Source: Amphiscolops sp. MND2022 (Eukaryota). Taken from it: a DNA stretch of 64,000 nucleotides. The translations under genes were made by a program, and so were the position numbers. The notes beneath the pieces were generated by a model. The model was not told where the DNA came from and made no database searches. It saw only the letters and a list, made by a program, of their open reading frames with translations. The stretch lies in the NCBI GenBank assembly GCA_964187785.1, contig OZ076417.1:43772001-43836000 (forward strand). Direction: 5' to 3'. Positions 1 through 62,318 of the stretch are shown piece after piece. Within the stretch, counting starts at the first letter, position 1. Every line of letters begins with the position of its first letter.

Positions 1-577
1 GTCCATAGAATACTGTGGATGGTTTGCAGCCTACAGTCTCGTGATACGTTGTATTGTAGTTCATGACTGCAATTTGGACGTATTTGTGTCACATTGAACG
101 TCTTTCTCCTGTCGATGTTTTAAGAGCTGTTTCAATTGAAGCAAGAGTTCGTTCTAGGATCCCAATTGTTTGCGCGTGTTTCGTAGAGGCATGGCTAATT
201 TGGGTATCCAGTATCTGCGTTATTTCTGCGACGACTTCTGATCTGAATTGTGAGCCTTCATCTGATAGGATTAGTGTTGGCAGACTTCCATGTCCTGTCA
301 TGACGTCGACAATGCATCGTCCAATTGTTTTTGCTGTGACATTCTGTGTTGGATATGCGAAAAGATAGCGCGAGAACACATCAATCATCGTTACGATATT
401 TCGATACCCTGCAGAATTTGGCAGATTCGATAATATGTCGATTTCTAGGATATCTTCCGGTCCCAAGATGTGTTCCGTGTTGTTGAACATTTTTGGTCTG
501 CATTGATTATTATTGATTCTTTTGTATTTGATGCAATCTTCGCATTGCAGTACCCATTGTTTGAATCTTTTGGCCAA
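1..577 (-). pseudogene. Gypsy integrase core remnant
   Basis: CEDC zinc half-site; DDE-like triad ILEIDIL / ILSDEGSQF / ILERT; VTMIDVFSRYLFAYP. After a TGA at 89-91 the frame continues HKYVQIAVMNYNTTYHETVGCKPSTVFYG to the window edge. Confidence 0.9.
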
Positions 578-1894
578 ACCCGGTTAGTAGTATTTGGATT
601 TGAATTCCTGAATCACTTTTGTGATTCTTGGGTGTTTTCCCATTTGACCGTGAATTGCCTTTAGGGGTTCCGTAATTAGGTGTTTGGGGAATAATATCTG
701 ATGATAACTCATTTGTCCACATTCCCCGTTTTATTTCCTCATCAGTGTGCCGTCCTTGACTATTAGTCTATTTCCTGGACTAGTAGGCGTTTTGCAATCG
801 GGTCTGTCTGTAAGAGGTGTTTGTCATATTCTTCACATATCAGTTTCCATTTGATTGCTTTGAAGACTATATCTGTGTCTTGTTCAAATCTGATACGTTC
901 GTCTTCTTCTATTGCCTCAAAGGTATATGATGCCTTGTTTGTTGGAATTGGGGTTGTATCTTCGATAGTCACTTTTATTTTTGTCGTGTCTTCGTCGCGC
1001 GCATTTTGTCTCGCTTGTTCCTTTTGTAACAGGATTTCTTCCTCGGTTTCGATAGTTTCTTCCGGAAGAAGGAAATGTTGCTCTTCGTCTGCGACGTCTG
1101 TTGATTGTTGATAGACTTGTATTGGCCGGATCTTGACTTGTATCTTGATGTCGTTACGATGTTTCAATACCCTGCAGAATTTGGCAGATCCGATAGTATG
1201 TCGGTTTCTAGGATATCTTCCGGTCCCAAGACATGTTCCGTGTTGTTGAACATTTTTGGTGTGCTTTGATTATTATTGATTCTTTTGTATTTGATGCAAT
1301 CTTCGCATTGCAGTACCCATTGTTTGAATCTTTTGGCCAAACCCGGTAAGTAGTATTTGGATTTGCATTCTTGAATCACTTTTGTGATTCTTGGGTGTTT
1401 TCCCATTTGACCGTGAATTGCCTTTAAGGGTTCCGTAATTAGGTGTTTGGGGAATAATATCTGATGATAACTCATTTGTCCACATTCCCCGTTTTATTTC
1501 CTCATCAGTGTGCCGTCCTTGACTATTAGTCTATTTCCTGGACTAGTAGGCGTTTTGCAATCGGGTCTGTCTGTAAGAGGTGTTTGTCATATTCTTCACA
1601 TATCAGTTTCCATTTGATTGCTTTGAAGACTATATCTGTGTCTTGTTCAAATCTGATACGTTCGTCTTCTTCTATTGCCTCAAAGGTATATGATGCCTTG
1701 TTTGTTGGAATTGGGGTTGTATCTTCGATAGTCACTTTTATTTTTGTCGTGTCTTCGTCGCGCGCATTTTGTCTCGCTTGTTCCTTTTGTAACAGGATTT
1801 CTTCCTCGGTTTCGATAGTTTCTTCCGGAAGAAGGAAATGTTGCTCTTCGTCTGCGACGTCTGTTGATTGACTTGTATTGGTCGGATCGTGATG
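388..1894. repeat. Tandem duplication inside pol (copies 388-1150 and 1151-1894)
   Basis: Near-identical blocks with a 763-bp offset (ccctgcagaatttggcaga at 407 and 1170). TCGTT is shared at all three junction points (388, 1151, 1895). Confidence 0.93.
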
Positions 1895-2472
1895 TCGTTT
1901 CTGATTTTTAGTTGAACTCTTTCCTTGGGGTTGAGATCGATCCTAGATAGGAAATCAGCCGCTGTATTTTGCGTTCCCGCTACGTGCATGATGTGGAAGT
2001 TGAATTGTAGTTTGTAATCGCAAGCATTGCATAGTGAGGGAGGAATCGCCTTTGTTTGGAAAAAGCGTGTTACCGATCTGTTGTCAGTCATTACCAGTGT
2101 AGGTAGAGTTGTTTCCCACAGTGAATAGCTGTAGTCTAGGAATGCGTGGTATATTGCCAAGAAGACTTTGCAGTAAATTGACATTTTCAGTTGGGCTGGG
2201 GAAAACACTTTTGATCCAAATGCTACAAGAGTGAAAGTTTTCTGTTTGGCATTGAGTTTTTTATCGTTGTCTTCTTCGATCATTAGCGCAAATCCTGAGT
2301 CGCGGAAGCTGACAACTGTCATTAGGACGTATTGGCGTCCTGTGATTGGTTGTTTGAGAGCCAATCTGCATGCTTCCGCTAGTGCTGCGTTGATTGTTTG
2401 GTAGTTGTCTAGTACTTCTTCTGTTACCTTGATTTGTTTGTCTGCTTTCAGGAGTTCGTAAAAATCGAGCAA
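1738..2472 (-). pseudogene. Gypsy RT-connection / RNase H remnant
   Basis: LVAFGSKVFSPAQLKMSIYCKVFLAI, LVMTDNRSVTRFF and HVAGTQNTAADFLSR motifs. Confidence 0.88.
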
Positions 2473-2640
2473 TCTTTCTCACAGCCGCGGGATGTAGTTG
2501 CGGTAATAGTTGACAAACCTATATATCTTTGTACTTGCTTCTTCAATTTTGGGAATCTTACGTTTGCTAAGAATTTTTGAATTTTGTGGTCCTGGGGGGC
2601 AATTCGTTATGGGGTAATAGTTCTTTCGAGGAATTCAACT

Positions 2641-3404
2641 TCAGTCACTCCGAAATGGCATGCAATTTTCAATTATTGGTTTAAGTCCTGCTTGTCTGAT
2701 GCATTCAAAGACTGCGCGTATGTTGCGCATCAATTGCGCGACTGAGTTGACGGCTATTCCAATATTATTCACATTTTGCGCACATTGGTCAGTTTCAATC
2801 ACTTTGTCTAAATACTCCCTCATAAAACTTGAGAATGCGGATAGTGCTCGGCTCAATCCTTGTGCTAGTCTTTTGTAGGCGAACGTCCTGCTTGCGAAGT
2901 TGAAAGCTAGCATTTCGATTGATCTTTGGTCTGCCATTTGTAAGCAGTGATATGCCTGTGAGCAATCTAGTTTGCAAAACAGTTTCTTCCAGCTAGGTGT
3001 TGAGCTGCTTCTGACAGCGTGCTAACTGGATGACTGTTGTTGATGTAGTCGTCCGAGATTAGCGCGTTGATTTTTCGCAAGTCGACAAGTAGTCGCAATT
3101 TTCCATTCGGTTTGCGTTGTGCAAAAATCGGACTTGCATACTTTGAGGTTGGTAGGGTTGTTATGATTCCATAGCTGTGCATTAGCGCTAATGCGACTGT
3201 TAGGTTTTCTTTCAAGTTGTATGGTACTGGCAGGCTTTGCATGTAGAGTTTACGCTCGTCCTTCGGCGCCAGTTTCACTTTGAAGCTGTTATTTTTACTA
3301 TTGTCGAGTCGGTGACGCGCGAAGATGTCATTGTATTGGACTATGGTTTGTTCAAGCTGTTTTCTGTCATCGCCTTCAATCTGGAATCCTTTCCAGTGGA
3401 ACAT
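2641..3404 (-). pseudogene. Gypsy reverse transcriptase remnant (frameshifted)
   Basis: YASPIFAQRKPNGKLRLLVDLRKIN and FAYKRLAQGLSRALSAFSSFM. The YxDD position reads NVNN, so the enzyme is catalytically dead. Confidence 0.9.
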
Positions 3405-3546
3405 ATTTAGGAATTCTTTTCGTAATTCTTGTTCTTTTGTTGGGTGTAGTTCCTCTTTTTTGATGAGCTCGCGGATTTTTTTTAAATATCCGTCGTTGAA
3501 TTAGTGTGTGTTCTTCTTCTTTCCCTGGGTTTCCAGGTGTGGGGAA

Positions 3547-4683
3547 CTAGAGATTCTCGTCGTTTTGTTCGTTTTCTTTGGACTTCATGAGTTCATTCAC
3601 GTACATGTGTGTGTCATTGGGATCTTGCAACAGTTTTACTGGAGCAGCGTCGATGGGTCGCACTGATTTTGTATCCTCGGGTTTGAGAATTTGTAGTTCT
3701 ACCATTTTTGTGTGGTTTTTTATTGTGTGGGGGAAATCCGTCAGGTTGGATATTCTGATGTTTATTCTCTTGTTGTGAGCTGTTGCTAACGCTGGAGCGA
3801 CCATGATGATGTCTGTTTCGTCAAATTGTGGTAGTGGGTGTACCGCACCTGTGACGTCGTTTGCGTTGGTGGTGACTACTACTGCATTCACCGTTGTTAT
3901 TTGTTGGGGAAAGAGCGTTTGATTTCCATCTGCCATTATTTGGAGAGATTTAGGATTACAGTTCTCCATCTCATCCGTCATAGCCAATGTCATTTCGATT
4001 TGAGGAAAAATGATGCTTCCATTCGCTGTGTCAATCACTGCTTGGTGATTTCGCATGAAGTTCAGTCCTATTATGAGAAAAGATGTTTTCGATAGGATGA
4101 CGAATGTATCCGTGAATGTGTAGGTTCCAATGTTGAACTGTATATCGGCTGTGGCTATTGGTTGTTCTAGCTGAGCGTTGGCACGCTCAATTTTGAAGGG
4201 TGGTTGCGGATATTCATCGATGACACAGTTGTCACTGCTCATCTTCTTGATTAGATTGTAATCTGACCACGACATCGCGTTGATGAACTCTCCTGCGTCG
4301 ACAAGTCCGTCCATTGTTATTTCGCTGAACTCAAGTGGTAGGTGAAGTATCCGTCTTCGTTTTTTCAGTGGTATTGTTGAGTGTAACGGTATGTATAAGT
4401 CTCGGTCTTGTTCAGGGACATACACCTTCATATAGTTGAGTGAGGTGGGGAAATCTTGTGGGAAGATAGGATTCTTGTTGGAGCCGTTGGTATCTTCATT
4501 GGGTGGTTGTTCGTTGAGGGCATTGTCGGTTTCCTGTGTTGTGGTGGTGGTGAATTGGTGCCTAAAGGTGAGGGAGCACTGATCATATAGTTCTGGTTTG
4601 TCCCAGGGGTCGCATATGTAGTCTTTATCAAAGTCATAGATCCTGGGTTGGTTGGATTCGGGGAGTGGTCTCTTTGTGGTCAT
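3547..4683 (-). pseudogene. Gypsy aspartic protease plus protease-RT spacer
   Basis: LPLEFSEITMDGLVDAGEFINAMS (degenerate D-S/T-G) and IIGLNFMR (retropepsin IIG-x-D/N-F motif). Confidence 0.8.
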
Positions 4684-9422: not shown

Positions 9423-11531
9423 TCATAAATCAGAAAGAAAGATTTTAAGTGGCGGGAGGTGATACTTTGTTGAAAAGTCAAAGAAGCAGACAGTCACAGG
9501 CAGTTTCAATCTAGCGAGACAAGGAAAAACTTTGTAACGATAAGTCAAGCACACAGCGGAACTACTGAATGTTTCTCCATTTAGTAAACCTCCAATATAG
9601 GAATAGTCGTAACGGTACCAGACATAGTCGTAGTCGCCCTCATAGTCATAATAATCGTACTCATAGTTATAGTCGGTTACACTTCCATTTATAGTGCTGG
9701 AATTACCATCCACAGAGTTACTATTCCCAGAAACTAAATCACTTTCAACAACTAAATTACCATCAAAGGTAGTAAAAACAATCCCATCCTTATTTGGAAC
9801 TTTCTTGAACCCCAAACGAATGAACCATCGATTCATTCCAAAGCTAACATTTTTACGACAGTCGGATCCACAATCGAACAGATAAAAGCGAAACAGGAAA
9901 CCTGCTTCGTCAAAGTTTGTCGGATAGGCTAACGTTGCATTATGAGAGCGACAAACTTCTGCTTGTTCAGTTAGATTCAGTTCCTTTTCCGCACTATGTT
10001 TCAAGGAAAAATAGCAACGTTCGTTGTTCATGCCAAAAGAACCCCTTAGAGTTCCGCATTTGAGACGAGGATCTCGAAACTCGGTAGGAAACGCCTCTTT
10101 GAAAAACATAAACTTAAGCACTTGTTTTTCGTGGACATATCGTGTTTGGATTCTGCTGGCAAAACAATCGTCTTTCAATTGTGAGGAACTTGTGCTCACG
10201 TCAACACAAATTTTGGTGATAAAGACAATTGAGCTGGCTGCGAGAAGAAAAATTATTACACAAAAGGTCCAAAACTTTTTTTGGACAAACACTTTTTTGC
10301 TTTGTGAGAAATCTGGTTTCAATTTCGCATTTGACAAATGATTGCGTTGGGTTTCATTTGCTCCATTCTTGTTGCTACAAATTGCGTTTTTCAAGACGCA
10401 CAAGAACTTTTTTTGAAAAGGTTTCAAAATAACTAAGAAAAATACCGGATTCAATTGAGAATATAGAAGACAGAAGAGTTCTTTGCTGGAAGTTAATCGT
10501 TCTTCCACGACGTCAAGGTATGTCCGTTCGGAAATGGATTTCCTTGTGCTCTCATATCCCAATTTAACAGCCATGGTTGTGTAATAAATTGTCCAAGAGA
10601 TAACCCACAAAATCCAGTTCATCACGAATGCCAGAATCAAATTTCTGTTTCGATGCTGATTGCGTTCGCGTCTATGGAGGACTCTGAAAGTTCGTAAATT
10701 AAAAAATGCAGAAACGGAGGCAGGAACGCAGAAGAACAAAACAATATCGCGAGTTAGAATAGGTCTGTGAACATTGTTTCTGAAAATAAAGTATTGGCAA
10801 TTCCATATAAATCTATTCCCCTTTTTGAAAACATTTGTATTGAACATGGAATCAATTTGCCGTCCATTCACTGCCAAGTCCCAGACACTCAAAGTCATAA
10901 TTATTGCTATTGCTGGAAACAAAGCCATTGAAACCTTTCTCAAATTTTCCGCAGCTGCAATGCGTGCAGTAGGATGACATATTAGACAATATCTGAAAAA
11001 CGCTGATGTCAAAACGCAAACTCCAGTAGTGTACTCGTTCAGGATGGATCTGAAGAAAGTTAGAAAGCAGCCAAGGTTTCCGTCCACAAACGTGAGTACT
11101 TCGAAATCATCAGAACGGAAATATTCTACATTGTTTATCCCATCACGCAAATTACCGAAAGATATGACACTGTAAGCAATATTCGCAAAACCAGGTCCAG
11201 CGATATCAATGGCGGCTTGTACGCACACTGGAAAGAAAATCCAGTTTTGGAAGTCATCAGTTGTGAGAATACAGATTATTAGAAACGAATTCAAAACGAT
11301 GCATATGGCACTTCCCGATATGCTCATAATGGTTGTCCATAAGTAGAAAGAAAGCAACCCGTTGTCATAATATTTTGATTCAGTGTAGTCTACAGTTATT
11401 GTACTCAAGCCATTGAAATGACTGGCCAAATCTGGTACCAAACTGGAATTTCGAGTTTCTGAAACAGAAAAGTTCAAAATAGTTATGTCAATGACTTTTT
11501 TGTTTAGTCTTGTTTTCCAGTGAATGGCCAC
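9423..11531 (-). CDS. Rhodopsin-like (class A) 7TM receptor with an additional TM8 and a C-terminal C-type lectin-like domain; true start uncertain
   Basis: 702 uninterrupted codons. Seven hydrophobic helices with FRYCLICHP (DRY-region-like) and NPVFF (NPxxY-like). Extra hydrophobic segment FWTFCVIIFLLAASSIVFI (aa 420-438). Then C492..RCYFSL..QAEVCRSHNATLAYP..WFIRLG..CLTY..C..C, a CTLD-like cysteine pattern. The track start is GTG, with no in-frame ATG before aa 69. Confidence 0.85.
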   Translation of the reverse strand: MAIHWKTRLNKKVIDITILNFSVSETRNSSLVPDLASHFNGLSTITVDYTESKYYDNGLLSFYLWTTIMSISGSAICIVLNSFLIICILTTDDFQNWIFFPVCVQAAIDIAGPGFANIAYSVISFGNLRDGINNVEYFRSDDFEVLTFVDGNLGCFLTFFRSILNEYTTGVCVLTSAFFRYCLICHPTARIAAAENLRKVSMALFPAIAIIMTLSVWDLAVNGRQIDSMFNTNVFKKGNRFIWNCQYFIFRNNVHRPILTRDIVLFFCVPASVSAFFNLRTFRVLHRRERNQHRNRNLILAFVMNWILWVISWTIYYTTMAVKLGYESTRKSISERTYLDVVEERLTSSKELFCLLYSQLNPVFFLVILKPFQKKFLCVLKNAICSNKNGANETQRNHLSNAKLKPDFSQSKKVFVQKKFWTFCVIIFLLAASSIVFITKICVDVSTSSSQLKDDCFASRIQTRYVHEKQVLKFMFFKEAFPTEFRDPRLKCGTLRGSFGMNNERCYFSLKHSAEKELNLTEQAEVCRSHNATLAYPTNFDEAGFLFRFYLFDCGSDCRKNVSFGMNRWFIRLGFKKVPNKDGIVFTTFDGNLVVESDLVSGNSNSVDGNSSTINGSVTDYNYEYDYYDYEGDYDYVWYRYDYSYIGGLLNGETFSSSAVCLTYRYKVFPCLARLKLPVTVCFFDFSTKYHLPPLKIFLSDL

Positions 11532-13534
11532 TGGTAAATCATTTTCAAGGGAAATTTCATAAAGCGATTTTAGTTGTGAAATAGTGCCTCAAGCATAAGG
11601 GAAACGAGAATTTTTCACATTTTAGGAAACTACTGAATATTAGAAGCAGTATACTCGCGGAAGCACCAAGTTTTTACACTGAAATAAAAAACCTACTATT
11701 TCCAACTATCCATCGATATTAAGGACTAGACATTTTGAGTTTGATTGTCCTCACGGAACGTCTTGAAACTTCCAAAAAACATAAAGTCTATATTTAAATG
11801 AGTTTCATCTGCATTTAGTTTGGCAGCGTGTTTTTTTTCGCAGCGAGGACAAGGGAGTGTACCCTAGTCCAGATTCCTTGAACTTTTTACATGCTGCATG
11901 GAAATATGCAGGCTAATTTTTTAAAAAACATGGAAAATTCCGGGACCATGCATGGAAACATTTTGTAGGATTTCAATGCAGTCTCCACTATTTGACTTAA
12001 AACTGAAAACATTTCCACTTCTTCACCGCAGCGATACCTTTGTTTTCACACGTAAGTTTCTCAAGTAAGTACCTTATGTAATCACCGTTTTTCAAAAAGC
12101 ACGCTGAATATGACGCTACTTTGAAACTTATAGTGTGACTGAAGGTTATTTGCAATAAAATTGCGGTAAAACTGACGAAGTTCTCAGCTGCTTACAAAAT
12201 AGAACGGTGTCTTAGTGAAACCTGCAAAACTTTGCGGCGCCGAAATGCCGCTAAATTTAGGATGCATCTTATAGGCAGCTTGATAAAATTTAATCAAATC
12301 AGTGAAGTTTTAATGCAAAGACGTTTCTCAGAGAATTTTATAAAATGACGGAAAATTAGCTTGGTAACCTAGAAAAACATGTGAAAAGATTCAGCAGTTA
12401 AATCCAGGGTAATGAAGTTGGTTTCTTCAAGAATGCTTAACGTGGAGTTTAAATTGGTAAGATATCAGTGTTGTGGTCTTGCGGAAGGCTGTGGAGGGTA
12501 CAAGAAGTACCAATTCTGTGATTAAATATCAAAAAGCGGTCTCTCTTTTGGGAGAAATGTTGCAAGTGATGTTTCACCAGATCAAGTATTTCTGTTACAA
12601 AGCGATCGTTAGGGCATGTGAAGGAAATCATGCGAATATTCGTCTGAATAATCTGGTATACAAAATTACCTCAGGTGAGGTTTTTAGGAATGCGTTTCGA
12701 ATTAAAATATCTGGTCAGGAGTAGATTGAATGGTAAGGGGCGTATTGGGTTTAACGGAGCAGTGTGTTGAAGTGGAGCATTTCGTATTTCATTAGCGATA
12801 GTAGTTGAAGGATTATATTTATACTGTTATCTAAGTTTGTATGTACAGAAATTTGAGAAAATGGAATATGAAATATAATTAGGAATGTACGCAAGAGACA
12901 AAATTCGTGACTTCATCTGGTATATTCGAAGGAAAAAAGAAATCGTCACTCATAACGAGACATTTTTGACGAACAATATTTGAGCGATTTGAATTTTTGT
13001 AGGGATTTATTGTAATACAATGTTTGACAAGGTCATGAATACGTATTGAACCGACAGTTGCGTTGTCATCAATGGTGGAGGGTAATGGAAGGCTGAAATT
13101 TGAAAATTTTGGTTTTTTTTTAAAAAAAAAGTTTTGAAGACATTTTTCTTCAAGAACGAGCGTGCATGTTTGGTGGTGTTATTCACGAAAGGAAAGTTTT
13201 TAGGTCGTTGAGGTTGGTATAAGGAGTTTATTTGGGTATCAGTGGTATCATTAGAAATGTCGGTTGTAGAAAGTCTAGTACATTGCGTTAGAGTTGGTTG
13301 TGTCGAGTTTAAGATTGTGGGAGGAGTGATTTCTATTATATTTGATTGTATAGAGTTGGCAGACGAAAGGCAATATAATAAAAAGTTACTTCTCAAAACT
13401 TGAAGATAACATTTTTCCTTTGAATTTTGCCTATATTTCAAGATAATTTGAGTTGTTGAGTTATTTCAAGTTGAGTTGTTTGAAGCAAGAAGTTGATAGA
13501 GTTGAATGCACGGAAGAACAGCAGAGAGAACATT

Positions 13535-26739: not shown

Positions 26740-27861
26740 TCATCGAGCGGTGAAATTTTTGATGTTAGGGTGAAGTTCAATGTTCAACATGTGTTTTATG
26801 GACCTTGTGACATTTTCAACTTTGGGGAGTGACAGTTGCTCCAAGTTGGCAGCATAGGGCATGGGCACGTCGGCTTGGGTGACTCTCATTGGAGGGGCAT
26901 CCAGATAATCGAAGGCATCTGATTCTACAATTCTGGCAACAATTTCGGATCCAACTCCACTTTGCGGCCATCCGGCCTCGACTGTGAGTAGATGGTTAGT
27001 CTTTTTAACTGAGTTCGCCACTGTTTCCATGTCAAGAGGTCGAATTGTTCTCAGGTTTATGACCTCGGCGTCGACTCCGTACTGCTCCTTGAGTTCCTGG
27101 GCTGCGTCCAAACATATAGCCACTTGTTTTGAGAACGATACAATTGTTACGTCACTGCCTTCTTTCTCGACGTGCGCTTTTCCTATTGGCAGAACAAAGT
27201 TTTCATCTAATGCTTCGTCTGACAATTCACAAGGGTTACCGTAAGCTAATTCGTTTTCAAGAAACACGACCGGGTCGTTATCTCGAACTGCAGCTTTGAA
27301 AAGACCCCTGTAGTCCTCGCCGGAATACGGAGAAATCACTTTCAAACCCGGGTTGTGTCCGTACCATGCTGCGAAACAGATGCTATGCTGTGCTGCAACG
27401 CCAGCCGCCGGGCCATTCGGACCTCGAAAGACGATGGGACAAGTGACGTCACCAGCTGACATGTAATGACTCTTGGCAGCAGAATTCAACACCTGGTCAA
27501 TGGCCTGCATTGCGAAATTGAAGGTCATGAACTCACAAATCGGTCGCAACCCAGCGAAGGCAGCGCCCACAGCAATTCCAGCGAAACCCATTTCTGTGAT
27601 AGGCGTATCGATGACTCGTTTGTCGCCCCATTTTTTGTAGAGGTTTTTTGTTACTTTGTAGGCTCCATCGTATTGAGCTACTTCTTCGCCCAAAATAAAA
27701 ACGTTGTCGTTCAATCGAATTTCATCATCTATGGCGCTGTTCAGTGCATCTCTGATAGTCATTTGAGTAGCTGATCGGAATGCTAGCTTCTGGGCTGATT
27801 TGAGAGACTGCATGCACTTCCTCAGGCCATTAGAGCCGGCAAATCGGTTCAAACTATTCAT
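26740..27861 (-). CDS. PDHB: Pyruvate dehydrogenase E1 beta subunit, mitochondrial (intronless, 373 aa)
   Basis: Basic N-terminal presequence, then [107 protein letters not shown]. Confidence 0.98.
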
Positions 27862-60472: not shown

Positions 60473-60612
60473 CTGAAAGCAAACCAATCTACTTCAATTA
60501 CTTTTGCACTTGCAAGTATTATTGAACTACAATGAAATTGTCGAAATACTTGATGCACTTCACTTTTCACAAAATTCGGCAAAAATACAAAACATTAGCG
60601 GCGAAAACTAAC

Positions 60613-61244
60613 GCAAGGCGCCTAATTAGCAAGTTGAAATGCTGCATGTCTTCATCTTTGAGTTCGTTTCCTAATAATGCTTCTAGTGCCGTCTTGTCTA
60701 TCCATTGTTGATCTTGGGGATTAAATGACAATTGCTTTGTTGATCTCTCTCCAGAACTCAAGGCTGCATCTGATTGGTGGATGGCATGGGAAATGGAGAA
60801 ACAAACGGTGGCAAATTGCTTACGAGAAGTGTAGAAAAAAGGGTTTCTAGGACGACCTTTTGGATCAACATCCAAATTTTGAACAGGAGGGAACAATTCC
60901 TCCGGGTGTTTCATGATCGGTTTTGCATCTTTACCAAACAAAGCAGTCGGGAACAAGTATTGGATACATTTGTCGATATCGTTTTGTGTCATTAAATTAA
61001 CATCTAAACCCATCATATTGGCCAAATGTCTTTTACCGATCTGAAACTTTTCAATTTGATGGGCCATGAATTCGGAATCTGCTGAGGTTTTATTGGGAGG
61101 TGGTCTTGGGTAGAAACGGTGAGGTGGTTGAGGATCTTGCCGATAAGGATCCTTCGGTTCAGAGAAACGGGGCGGAAACAACATGACTCTATCGCCAGGG
61201 CCACCTTTGAATCGCCTCCAAATGAGAGTCAATTTTCGGTTCAT
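60613..61244 (-). CDS. MRPS9: MRPS9 coding exon 1 (632 bp)
   Basis: EFMAHQIEKFQIGKRHLANMMG..IQYLFPTALF..AKPIMKHPEELFP..GRP..FFYT is the uS9m N-terminal signature. Donor GC|GTTAGT at 60613/60612; intron 1 is 140 bp. Exon total 632+169+354 = 1155 nt = 384 aa + stop. Confidence 0.95.
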
Positions 61245-61439
61245 GATGGTCCCATCTGAAAACGATCAACAATCACAAGTATCCACTAGAAAATGAACCA
61301 TCTTAGTGTGACATCGACATGAAGGTGACTATTCATACAGCGGAATTTGCAAATTAGGTCTCAAATAGCAGAATTTAAATTACTAGTTACAGCCAATATG
61401 TATGGAACTTGATTTATTAGCAATTTGTTGTACGGGGTA

Positions 61440-62318
61440 CAGGGGTCCGCAATTATTAATTGCAATTAAATTGGCATTTAAAATTTTAAAAACCAATTAA
61501 TTGAAAATTGGACACTTCATGAAACAATTATTGCAATAATTGGCAAATCAAAACAACAGTTGTCAATGCATAAATTCAGACAAAATTGATGAAAATTTGC
61601 CCAAAAATAATGAACTCAAAGAGTCATTCAGTAGCGTTGACGACTTCGTTGATGAGACTCAGGTCCCACAGTCTCTTGTTCGACATCAGAAACAGCTGCT
61701 GCTCCAGATAAATAGGTTGTATCTTCCGTCGCAAGTCATCATAAGCATATCCAGCCCGGCTGAAAAGTCTCTTCATCTCTTTCTCAACCCGATCAGAAAC
61801 AAGGTGCATGTACTTCTCAAGGGTGTGAACAGAGATTTTATCCAACGACGAATATTTGCGTGTTAGGCTACTCTCCACAAATGAAAATGGCTTTAGTTCC
61901 ATACACACCCATTCCAACCATCCGTATACAGTTTCACTCTTTCGACAATGCATAAATCGAAGCGTCTGCTGATCCGAAATAGATGTATTGTCGTTTCCAT
62001 GTTGAGAACGGATATGTTGCATTAGGTTAGACCAGCCTGTACCATCTTTCCTTTTTAGAAGTTTTCCACAGTGGCACTTGTAAACATCATTCTCTAGTTT
62101 AGTGAAATACTTCTTCGTTAAAGCCTTGTAGTCTTTTGGCGCTTCAACTTTAGATGTCATTTCAAACCTGAAAAAGATAATGCATTGCGCTCAATCAATT
62201 ATTGCAATAATTGGCTTGTTAATTTCCAATAATTGAAAAATGCAAGATGAGAAAATCAATTAATTGATCAATTATAATTGCAATTATTGCTTCATCAATT
62301 TTTAATTGCGGACCCCTG
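61440..62318 (-). mobile_element. hAT-superfamily DNA transposon, internally deleted (879 bp)
   Basis: 16-bp perfect TIR CAGGGGTCCGCAATTA; perfect 8-bp TSD ACGGGGTA (61432-61439 and 62319-62326); subterminal CAATT/AATTG motif clusters. Confidence 0.95.
61624..62160 (-). pseudogene. Truncated transposase N-terminus with BED-type zinc finger
   Basis: KKYF..YKCHCGK..GWSNLMQHIRSQH, then WLEWVCMELKPFSFVES..TRKY..ISVHTL. No DDE core remains. Confidence 0.82.

Follow-up and report, generated by a model that had tools for sequence, protein, structure and literature searches.

How might a G-protein-coupled receptor (GPCR) come to display a lectin-like domain behind, rather than in front of, its membrane-spanning core? 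This question is raised by a long open reading frame (ORF) at positions 9423..11531, minus strand, of a 64,000-nucleotide stretch of the genome of Amphiscolops sp. MND2022 (assembly GCA_964187785.1, contig OZ076417.1, positions 43,772,001 to 43,836,000), which was analyzed as a whole and is hereafter called the window. Seven helices, with the N-terminus outside the cell and a C-terminal tail in the cytosol, define the GPCRs, and the accessory ectodomains known in them are N-terminal. A first-pass annotation of the window had read this frame as a class A seven-transmembrane (7TM) core followed by an extra transmembrane helix and a C-terminal C-type-lectin-like domain (CTLD) returned to the outside, a layout that it did not know from characterised receptors. 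Our analysis bears out the architecture and shows that it is not singular: the tail of the protein has at least 131 matches in the genome. We consider it probable that the locus is a member of a large lineage-restricted family of eight-transmembrane (8-TM) receptors, in which a divergent class A GPCR is continued by a basic loop, an eighth transmembrane helix (TM8), a neck and a CTLD lying outside.

The frame comprises 702 codons, whose numbering we retain throughout; the probability of such a run without a stop is ~5e-21 at the base composition of the window. All 702 amino acids are identical in an independent ENA assembly (P0001). The motifs singled out in the first pass, namely NPVFF, KPFQKKF and KKVFVQKK, are present in it, as is the hydrophobic segment after TM7 and helix 8, which we place at aa 420-443 (nt 10274-10203). 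All receptor features described below lie on the minus strand.

The 7TM bundle occupies aa 57-368 (10428..11363). An AlphaFold2 (AF2) model of the full-length protein, built with a 30-sequence alignment, places its helices at residues 57-90, 97-132, 151-185, 194-221, 258-287, 292-326 and 338-368, followed by helix 8 at aa 370-385 (10377..10424), with a predicted local distance difference test score (pLDDT) of 75-90 for TM1-7 and helix 8. When this part was searched against the PDB with Foldseek, class A receptors alone were recovered (probability 1.00, TM-score by target 0.6-0.76), including the orexin-1/2, mu and delta opioid, M2-M5 muscarinic and neuromedin U (NMU2) receptors. The window copy displays N1.50, D109 (2.50), the TM3-ECL2 cysteine pair C155-C245, F-R180-Y181, P270 (5.50), W313 (6.48) and NPVFF. 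Across the 30 aligned sequences R180, P187 and P270 are invariant, and C155, Y181, C245, the tryptophans W306/W309/W313 and P371 nearly so; D109, N361 and P362 are conserved in a 10-sequence alignment, the latter two as part of an NPxxF motif (N361-P362-x-x-F), and the helix-8 motif KPF is likewise conserved. The Pfam model 7tm_1 is detected in nine of 10 close relatives (best E = 3.7e-10), and distant family members score 32.8-45.6 bits against the curated cut-off of 30.5; no match to 7tm_2 or GPS was obtained with Pfam in the window protein or its relatives. Together with the fold matches to class A, this places the protein outside the adhesion (class B2) receptors. Thus, the models support a class A GPCR fold for the 7TM part. 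The window copy does depart from the canonical motifs, with FRY for DRY, NPVFF for NPxxY and SWTI for CWxP. Ahead of the bundle, alignment and charge statistics point to an extracellular N-terminus (aa 25-56, 11364..11458) with a conserved NSS sequon; over the family this segment has a mean net charge of -2.7 and 0.9 sequons per sequence. Cys378 and Cys385 of helix 8 are possible palmitoylation sites, with a putative role in acylation.

At the other end of the protein, a CTLD can be delineated at aa 486-690 (9462..10076) from alignment, AF2, fold searches and profile links. In an alignment of 22 tail sequences, with identities down to 20%, the residues C492, R505, C506, F508, Q523, C527, G574, D590, C661, C671 and C682 are invariant, and N519 of the NLT sequon is nearly so. 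The six invariant cysteines are spaced as in a long-form CTLD: an N-terminal pair, C1 in alpha1, C2 and C3 flanking the last loop and C4 in the last strand. AF2 on the tail alignment returned two strands, alpha1, alpha2, three strands, a loop and three further strands, with a core pLDDT of 87-95. Foldseek against the PDB yielded 94 matches at E <= 0.001, of which the best 50 are all CTLDs (probability 1.00, E ~2e-5, TM-score by target 0.6-0.7), including those of CD23, tetranectin, SP-D, SP-A, CTLD4 of the mannose receptor, CTLD7 of PLA2R, langerin and CD69. Among the Swiss-Prot models it recovered tetranectin and the type II receptors CLEC12B, CLEC4G, CD23, CLEC1B, LOX-1 and langerin, with many of the alignments extending through the neck helix too. 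A shape search of the ESM Atlas gave Lectin_C in every row (rmsd 3.1-4.2 A over 130-143 residues in nine of 10 rows), and a feature search of the same resource placed 92 of 100 matches in Lectin_C clusters (score 0.93).

At the level of sequence, the link to CTLDs is weak but real. A hidden Markov model (HMM) of the family matched 122 proteins among 1.84 billion protein representatives, and the two weakest of its significant matches (E = 3e-4 and 9e-4) are a Branchiostoma asialoglycoprotein-receptor-like protein and a Spodoptera mannose receptor, which themselves score 1e-47 and 1e-85 with Pfam Lectin_C. A profile comparison with hhalign aligned the alpha1-beta-alpha2 region (E = 9.7e-5, probability 58%), and the four best PDB sequence matches, all sub-threshold at E ~0.2, are CD94, CD69 and CLEC2D. 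Taken with the models, these data support a true C-type-lectin-like fold for the C-terminal part. Its carbohydrate chemistry is another matter: the first-pass annotation had doubted Ca2+-dependent sugar binding, and with good reason, as neither the window protein nor the homologous positions of the 22-member alignment show the EPN/QPD and WND motifs of Ca2+ site 2. Counted over the whole of the 22 aligned sequences, there is no QPD, WND or WIGL and a single EPN, which belongs to another paralogue; FIRLGF occupies the position of WIGL, and F-T-x-F-D-G that of WxDG. As the Ca2+/sugar site is lacking, we term the domain lectin-like and do not regard it as a demonstrated lectin.

The region where the Ca2+/sugar-binding site of canonical lectins resides, namely the long loop of the CTLD, is here occupied by an acidic Tyr/Asp-rich insertion (aa 599-653, 9573..9737), which is disordered in both AF2 models (pLDDT <50). 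In the subfamily of the window copy this loop spans 68-100 aa, of which 34-56% are Asp, Glu or Tyr; in distant paralogues it spans 19-57 aa. Its length varies among copies, and in some an intron or break falls inside it. Tyrosines flanked by Asp or Glu dominate aa 617-645. Tyrosine flanked by acidic residues in a secreted domain is a classic sulphation site, and by analogy the loop is probably tyrosine-sulphated.

The placement of the CTLD outside the cell hinges on the segment that joins the two halves. Between helix 8 and TM8 lies a basic, presumably cytosolic loop (aa 386-419, 10275..10376), disordered in the AF2 model and in effect a fourth intracellular loop; helix 8 and this linker together have a family mean net charge of +5.9. 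TM8 itself (aa 420-443, 10203..10274) is predicted from hydropathy and the Lys/Arg bias and is helical in both models. It is the highest Kyte-Doolittle peak of the whole protein (2.54 over 19 aa), and an apolar stretch of 19-27 residues is present at this position in all 30 aligned members. Over these members the mean number of Lys and Arg residues is 4.3 in the 15 residues before TM8 vs 1.8 in the 15 after it. On the far side AF2 extends TM8 as one continuous helix into a predicted extracellular neck or stalk (aa 444-485, 10077..10202), similar to the necks of the type II CTLD receptors among the Foldseek matches. The CTLD region contains on average 2.5 sequons and ~7 cysteines per sequence across the family; in the window copy there are five sequons, at 519 (NLT), 531 (NAT), 561 (NVS), 610 (NSS) and 615 (NGS), as first reported. 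A CTLD that relies on disulphides and has a conserved glycosylation site should be luminal or extracellular, and for this TM8 must span the membrane. Thus, the charge bias across TM8, the invariant cysteines and the sequons uphold the outward placement of the lectin-like domain claimed in the first pass, and sequence statistics support it family-wide. As the C-terminus would then re-cross the membrane, what is a free cytosolic tail in other GPCRs would here form a closed loop of ~35-50 residues.

The architecture recurs across a large set of paralogues. Matches to the 293-residue tail number at least 131 in the 1.07-Gb assembly; most of them lie in open frames of 560-720 aa, and they include a tandem cluster on the chromosome of the window at 43.28-43.78 Mb. 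We sampled 32 paralogous loci, and all encode 7TM, TM8 and CTLD, save two that are truncated (L002 and L012); the fusion is accordingly that of the sampled copies in general. Some paralogues have two exons with their halves in neighboring frames, and the introns fall in the 7TM part or in the acidic loop, with none of those sampled at the fusion junction. About 10% of the tail matches carry stops, a minority of interrupted copies that is in keeping with turnover by birth and death. Comparison of seven close paralogues gave dN/dS values of 0.30 in the 7TM part, 0.51 in linker, TM8 and neck, and 0.26-0.35 in the CTLD, which indicates, from sequence comparison, that they are under purifying selection.

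Two observations on individual members of the cluster may be added here. The paralogue nearest to the window copy, L002 (G000:C9:43764412-43765308), lies ~17 kb off, has a tail 69% identical to it and is truncated and interrupted by TAA, so that we take this copy, which borders the tandem cluster, for a probable pseudogene. Further, several paralogues of the cluster have the end of the CTLD (~70 residues, covering C2 to C4) in a frame of its own, located 1-2.6 kb downstream from the main ORF (G000:C9:43562739-43562942, 43286106-43286321, 43339977-43340189 and 43725455-43725682), and those copies are thus inferred to have an intron or insertion within the Asp/Tyr-rich loop.

Beyond this genome, another ENA assembly contains two members (P0010 and P0104), and as P0010 is only ~35% identical to the best copy in the window genome, the family is present in at least one other organism. 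All true family members that we checked are unnamed and unannotated ENA proteins, and none is in NCBI or UniRef; likewise, word-based searches with the whole protein and with the 7TM part alone found unnamed ENA proteins and no named relatives. A search of the AlphaFold DB clusters with the full model recovered ordinary class A GPCRs and a few gene-model fusions, with no match spanning the CTLD; the longest alignments stop at query residues 581-596. As Pfam Lectin_C never fires on these proteins, standard Pfam surveys would miss the family.

The gene model needs one correction. The ORF was first described as uninterrupted, and this stands for aa 25-702, including the junction between GPCR and CTLD; it fails for codons 1-24, which are intronic, with a 5' exon to be expected upstream. 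The ORF begins with GTG directly after a stop, and its first in-frame ATG is codon 68, within TM1. In an alignment of the 5' regions of 10 paralogues, an acceptor TTTTTG(C/T)TTCAG is invariant (11470-11459 in the window), and conservation of both nucleotides and protein starts right after its TTCAG and is gone 5' of it. From these alignments, the TTCAG is read as a conserved 3' splice site; therefore, codons 1-24 are intronic, the main exon (aa 25-702, 9426..11458, stop codon 9423-9425) starts at 11458, and the coding sequence requires an upstream exon. The split codon at the start of the main exon needs one base from that exon. A hypothetical candidate, found by reading the sequence, lies at 11755..11782 (ATG, nine codons and one base, with the donor GTGAGG at 11754-11749); it is in phase 1, matching the acceptor, and the split codon would be C+AA, encoding Gln. 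The putative intron between them (11459..11754, ~296 nt) has a firm 3' end, marked by polypyrimidine and TTCAG, and a hypothetical 5' end. When 10 kb of upstream sequence was compared by BLAST with the upstream regions of eight paralogues, mainly dispersed repeats were recovered; the sole proximal element in common was the donor GTGAGGACAA of the candidate exon, which is also present in the two closest paralogues.

Several points weigh against the receptor-family reading. Neither of the expected Pfam domains is matched in the window protein: 7tm_1 gives nothing even at E = 10, and Lectin_C gives nothing either, in this protein or, at E <= 1, in any of 10 members. The topology rests on sequence statistics and models, and the neck (pLDDT 33-65) and the arrangement of the domains are of low confidence, with a predicted TM-score (pTM) of 0.50 for the full-length model. 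G-protein coupling is assumed for a sequence that has Phe in place of D3.49 of the DRY motif and NPxxF in place of NPxxY, and the ligand, tyrosine sulphation and sensory role are inferences. Finally, the ORF has no start codon of its own. The proposed 5' exon is a candidate that is in frame in the window copy alone, as its counterparts in the two closest paralogues have an ATG that either lies out of frame or leads to a stop codon, and a sequencing-run search returned no RNA run with the sequence and four DNA-type runs, all from one study.

The last of these points invite the best of the rival explanations, namely that the window copy is a silent or non-functional young pseudogene of a functional family, with the frame still open and the usable start or 5' exon lost. 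To elaborate, the main exon has no in-frame ATG before TM1, the candidate exon is hypothetical and non-coding in the closest paralogues, and the same sequencing-run search turned up no RNA. Copies are also being lost nearby, as in the TAA-interrupted neighbor ~17 kb off, ~10% of all tail matches have stops, and retroelements flank the gene. Against this stand 678 intact codons after a conserved acceptor, and pairwise dN/dS values of ~0.22-0.41 against six intact paralogues, which are averaged over both lineages. Moreover, an ATG before TM1 is missing from the main exons of five further intact paralogues too, which is what one would expect of genes that take it from a 5' exon, and a phase-compatible ATG exon with a GTGAGG donor is available 296 nt upstream. 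On balance we hold a silent copy to be unlikely.

A second alternative is that the locus yields two products, a 7TM GPCR and a separate type II lectin-like protein, by way of an internal promoter or start, alternative polyadenylation or proteolysis in the linker. The module of TM8, neck and CTLD does resemble a self-sufficient type II receptor, and the linker ahead of it is basic, disordered and the least constrained part of the protein (dN/dS 0.51). However, the two halves share one continuous frame in paralogues down to 18-30% identity and in the second organism, and the junction is free of stops and introns in every copy sampled. Further, the stretch between aa 320 and aa 479 of the window copy is devoid of Met, which leaves the module without an internal start before TM8. 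We accordingly rate two products as distinctly improbable. Least probable by a good measure is an ordinary 7TM receptor with a long cytosolic tail in which TM8 fails to span the membrane: AF2 confidence for the TM8 helix is only moderate in the full-length model and the topology is statistical and model-based, but TM8 is the most hydrophobic segment, is apolar in all 30 members and shows the positive-inside bias, while the CTLD fold, the six invariant cysteines and the conserved sequon are luminal or extracellular features. The conservation data favor none of the three.

Returning to the 8-TM receptor family as the preferred reading, both of its building blocks belong to known families, and it is the topology that is unusual. 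With class A peptide and amine receptors, such as the orexin, opioid, muscarinic and neuromedin U receptors, the protein shares seven helices with helix 8, a glycosylated extracellular N-terminus and the residues N1.50, D2.50, the TM3-ECL2 cysteines, R3.50-Y, P5.50, W6.48 and NPxx(F). It differs in that its C-terminus is predicted to re-cross the membrane and bear a folded ectodomain, with the free GRK/arrestin tail turned into a closed loop, and in its strong sequence divergence, which takes 7tm_1 below detection and includes FRY for DRY.

The C-terminal module in turn shows the order of elements of the type II CTLD receptors (CD23/FCER2, CLEC4G, CLEC12B, LOX-1/OLR1, langerin, CD69 and CD94): a basic cytosolic segment, a single transmembrane helix oriented N-in/C-out, a neck and a CTLD. 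These receptors are also its best fold matches and its best, albeit sub-threshold, PDB sequence matches, and TM8, neck and CTLD together look like a complete type II C-type-lectin receptor. Unlike in those receptors, the N-terminus of the module is not free and continues in frame from helix 8 in every sampled copy; the module further differs in the lack of EPN/QPD/WND, the degenerate WIGL (FIRLGF), the long acidic Tyr/Asp loop and the silence of Pfam Lectin_C. Latrophilin-type adhesion GPCRs with their Gal_Lectin domain, and polycystin-1 with an N-terminal CTLD, offer a parallel in that a fold of the carbohydrate-recognition type is placed in cis on a multi-pass signaling protein. However, their domains are N-terminal and joined to a class B2 core (7tm_2, GAIN/GPS) or to an 11-TM protein, whereas here a class A core has the domain at its C-terminal end and requires an extra helix to bring it outside. 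A last comparison concerns the acidic loop. Sulphated acidic Tyr clusters are found in the N-termini of chemokine receptors and in the Y-D/E-Y hinge motif of glycoprotein hormone receptors, and the window protein similarly has predicted sulphation sites at extracellular tyrosines flanked by Asp/Glu (aa 617-645); its cluster differs in lying within the long loop of a CTLD and in being far longer and repeat-like. The full-text literature that we searched, which left most subscription journals outside, described neither a C-terminal CTLD nor an eighth helix for any class A GPCR.

The surroundings of the gene are rich in repeats. Just upstream of the putative 5' exon, a dispersed repeat at 11861-12409 occurs in both orientations and is 79-82% identical to copies upstream of two paralogues. 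A degraded Ty3/gypsy-like retroelement with integrase-like, RNase H/RT-like and protease/gag-like ORFs (89-4683, minus strand) is located downstream of the receptor gene at a distance of ~4.7 kb, and an RT_RNaseH match is present on the ENA contig that corresponds to it. On the other side, a complete intronless ORF of 373 aa (26740-27861, minus strand) encodes a pyruvate dehydrogenase E1-beta with a mitochondrial-type presequence (Atlas score 0.97 to PDHB clusters), which suggests a retrogene or a functional single-exon copy. From 32300 to 57500 stretches a tandem array of at least 22 copies of a ~1,022-1,028-bp unit, most of them 95-100% identical, with older copies of 61-75% identity at the 32.3-37.4 kb end; it was missed by TRF because the period limit of that program was 500 bp, and it accounts for the flat GC and skew profile of that half of the window. 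Two ATG-initiated ORFs of 225 and 178 aa follow at 60567-62160 (minus strand), the second of which has, by eye, a BED-zinc-finger/hAT-transposase-like N-terminus. We also noted a mitochondrial contig of the same assembly (G000:C1929, loci L048 and L049; 14,704 bp, GC 34%) with ~22 reduced tRNAs, genes on both strands, the order cox1 ... nad5 ... cob-nad1 and TGA read as Trp (11 in cox1). These are features of a bilaterian invertebrate and not of a cnidarian, and the symbiont-sensing role once floated for the receptor finds no support.

As to how such a receptor may have arisen and may act, we advance the following scheme. In the fusion, the tail that a GPCR has in the cytosol would have been linked to the likewise cytosolic N-terminus of a type II CTLD receptor, an event that is topologically compatible with both partners. 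Since the CTLD has no Ca2+/sugar-binding residues, it might serve as a cis-tethered recognition module for a protein or other non-canonical ligand, with the ligand-binding loop replaced, in the subfamily of the window copy, by the acidic Tyr/Asp-rich stretch. The neck might drive oligomerization, as in CD23 or langerin. The CTLD could then be the recognition element of the 7TM bundle or a regulatory lid upon it; a complex prediction between the two parts (aa 25-410 vs aa 480-702) gave a score of 0.00 with a partner pLDDT <50, which is neutral as to contact between them. Engagement of a ligand would be relayed to the bundle and thence to G-protein signaling, which we propose because R3.50, P5.50, W6.48, NPxxF and helix 8 are retained. 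The broader proposition, which we regard as evenly poised, is that these proteins constitute an undescribed receptor class, in which a class A GPCR is continued in cis by a type II CTLD module, with eight obligate transmembrane helices and both termini outside. With at least 131 loci in this genome and a presence in at least one other organism, such a class would couple lectin-fold recognition directly to G-protein signaling, in one subfamily via a hyper-acidic and probably sulphated Tyr loop.

If this is true, then a closed loop can replace the free GRK/arrestin tail on the class A scaffold, and there is a second way to attach a ligand-binding ectodomain to a GPCR, for which the family would be a natural template in engineering receptors with C-terminal extracellular modules. 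It would also mean that two major recognition systems, the lectin-fold receptors and the GPCRs, have come together in one polypeptide. A large family with tandem arrays, in which some copies are intact and others broken, is in keeping with a repertoire for chemosensation or non-self recognition, and the sheer number of copies suggests that this lineage may possess a major sensory or immune repertoire that is invisible to current annotation.

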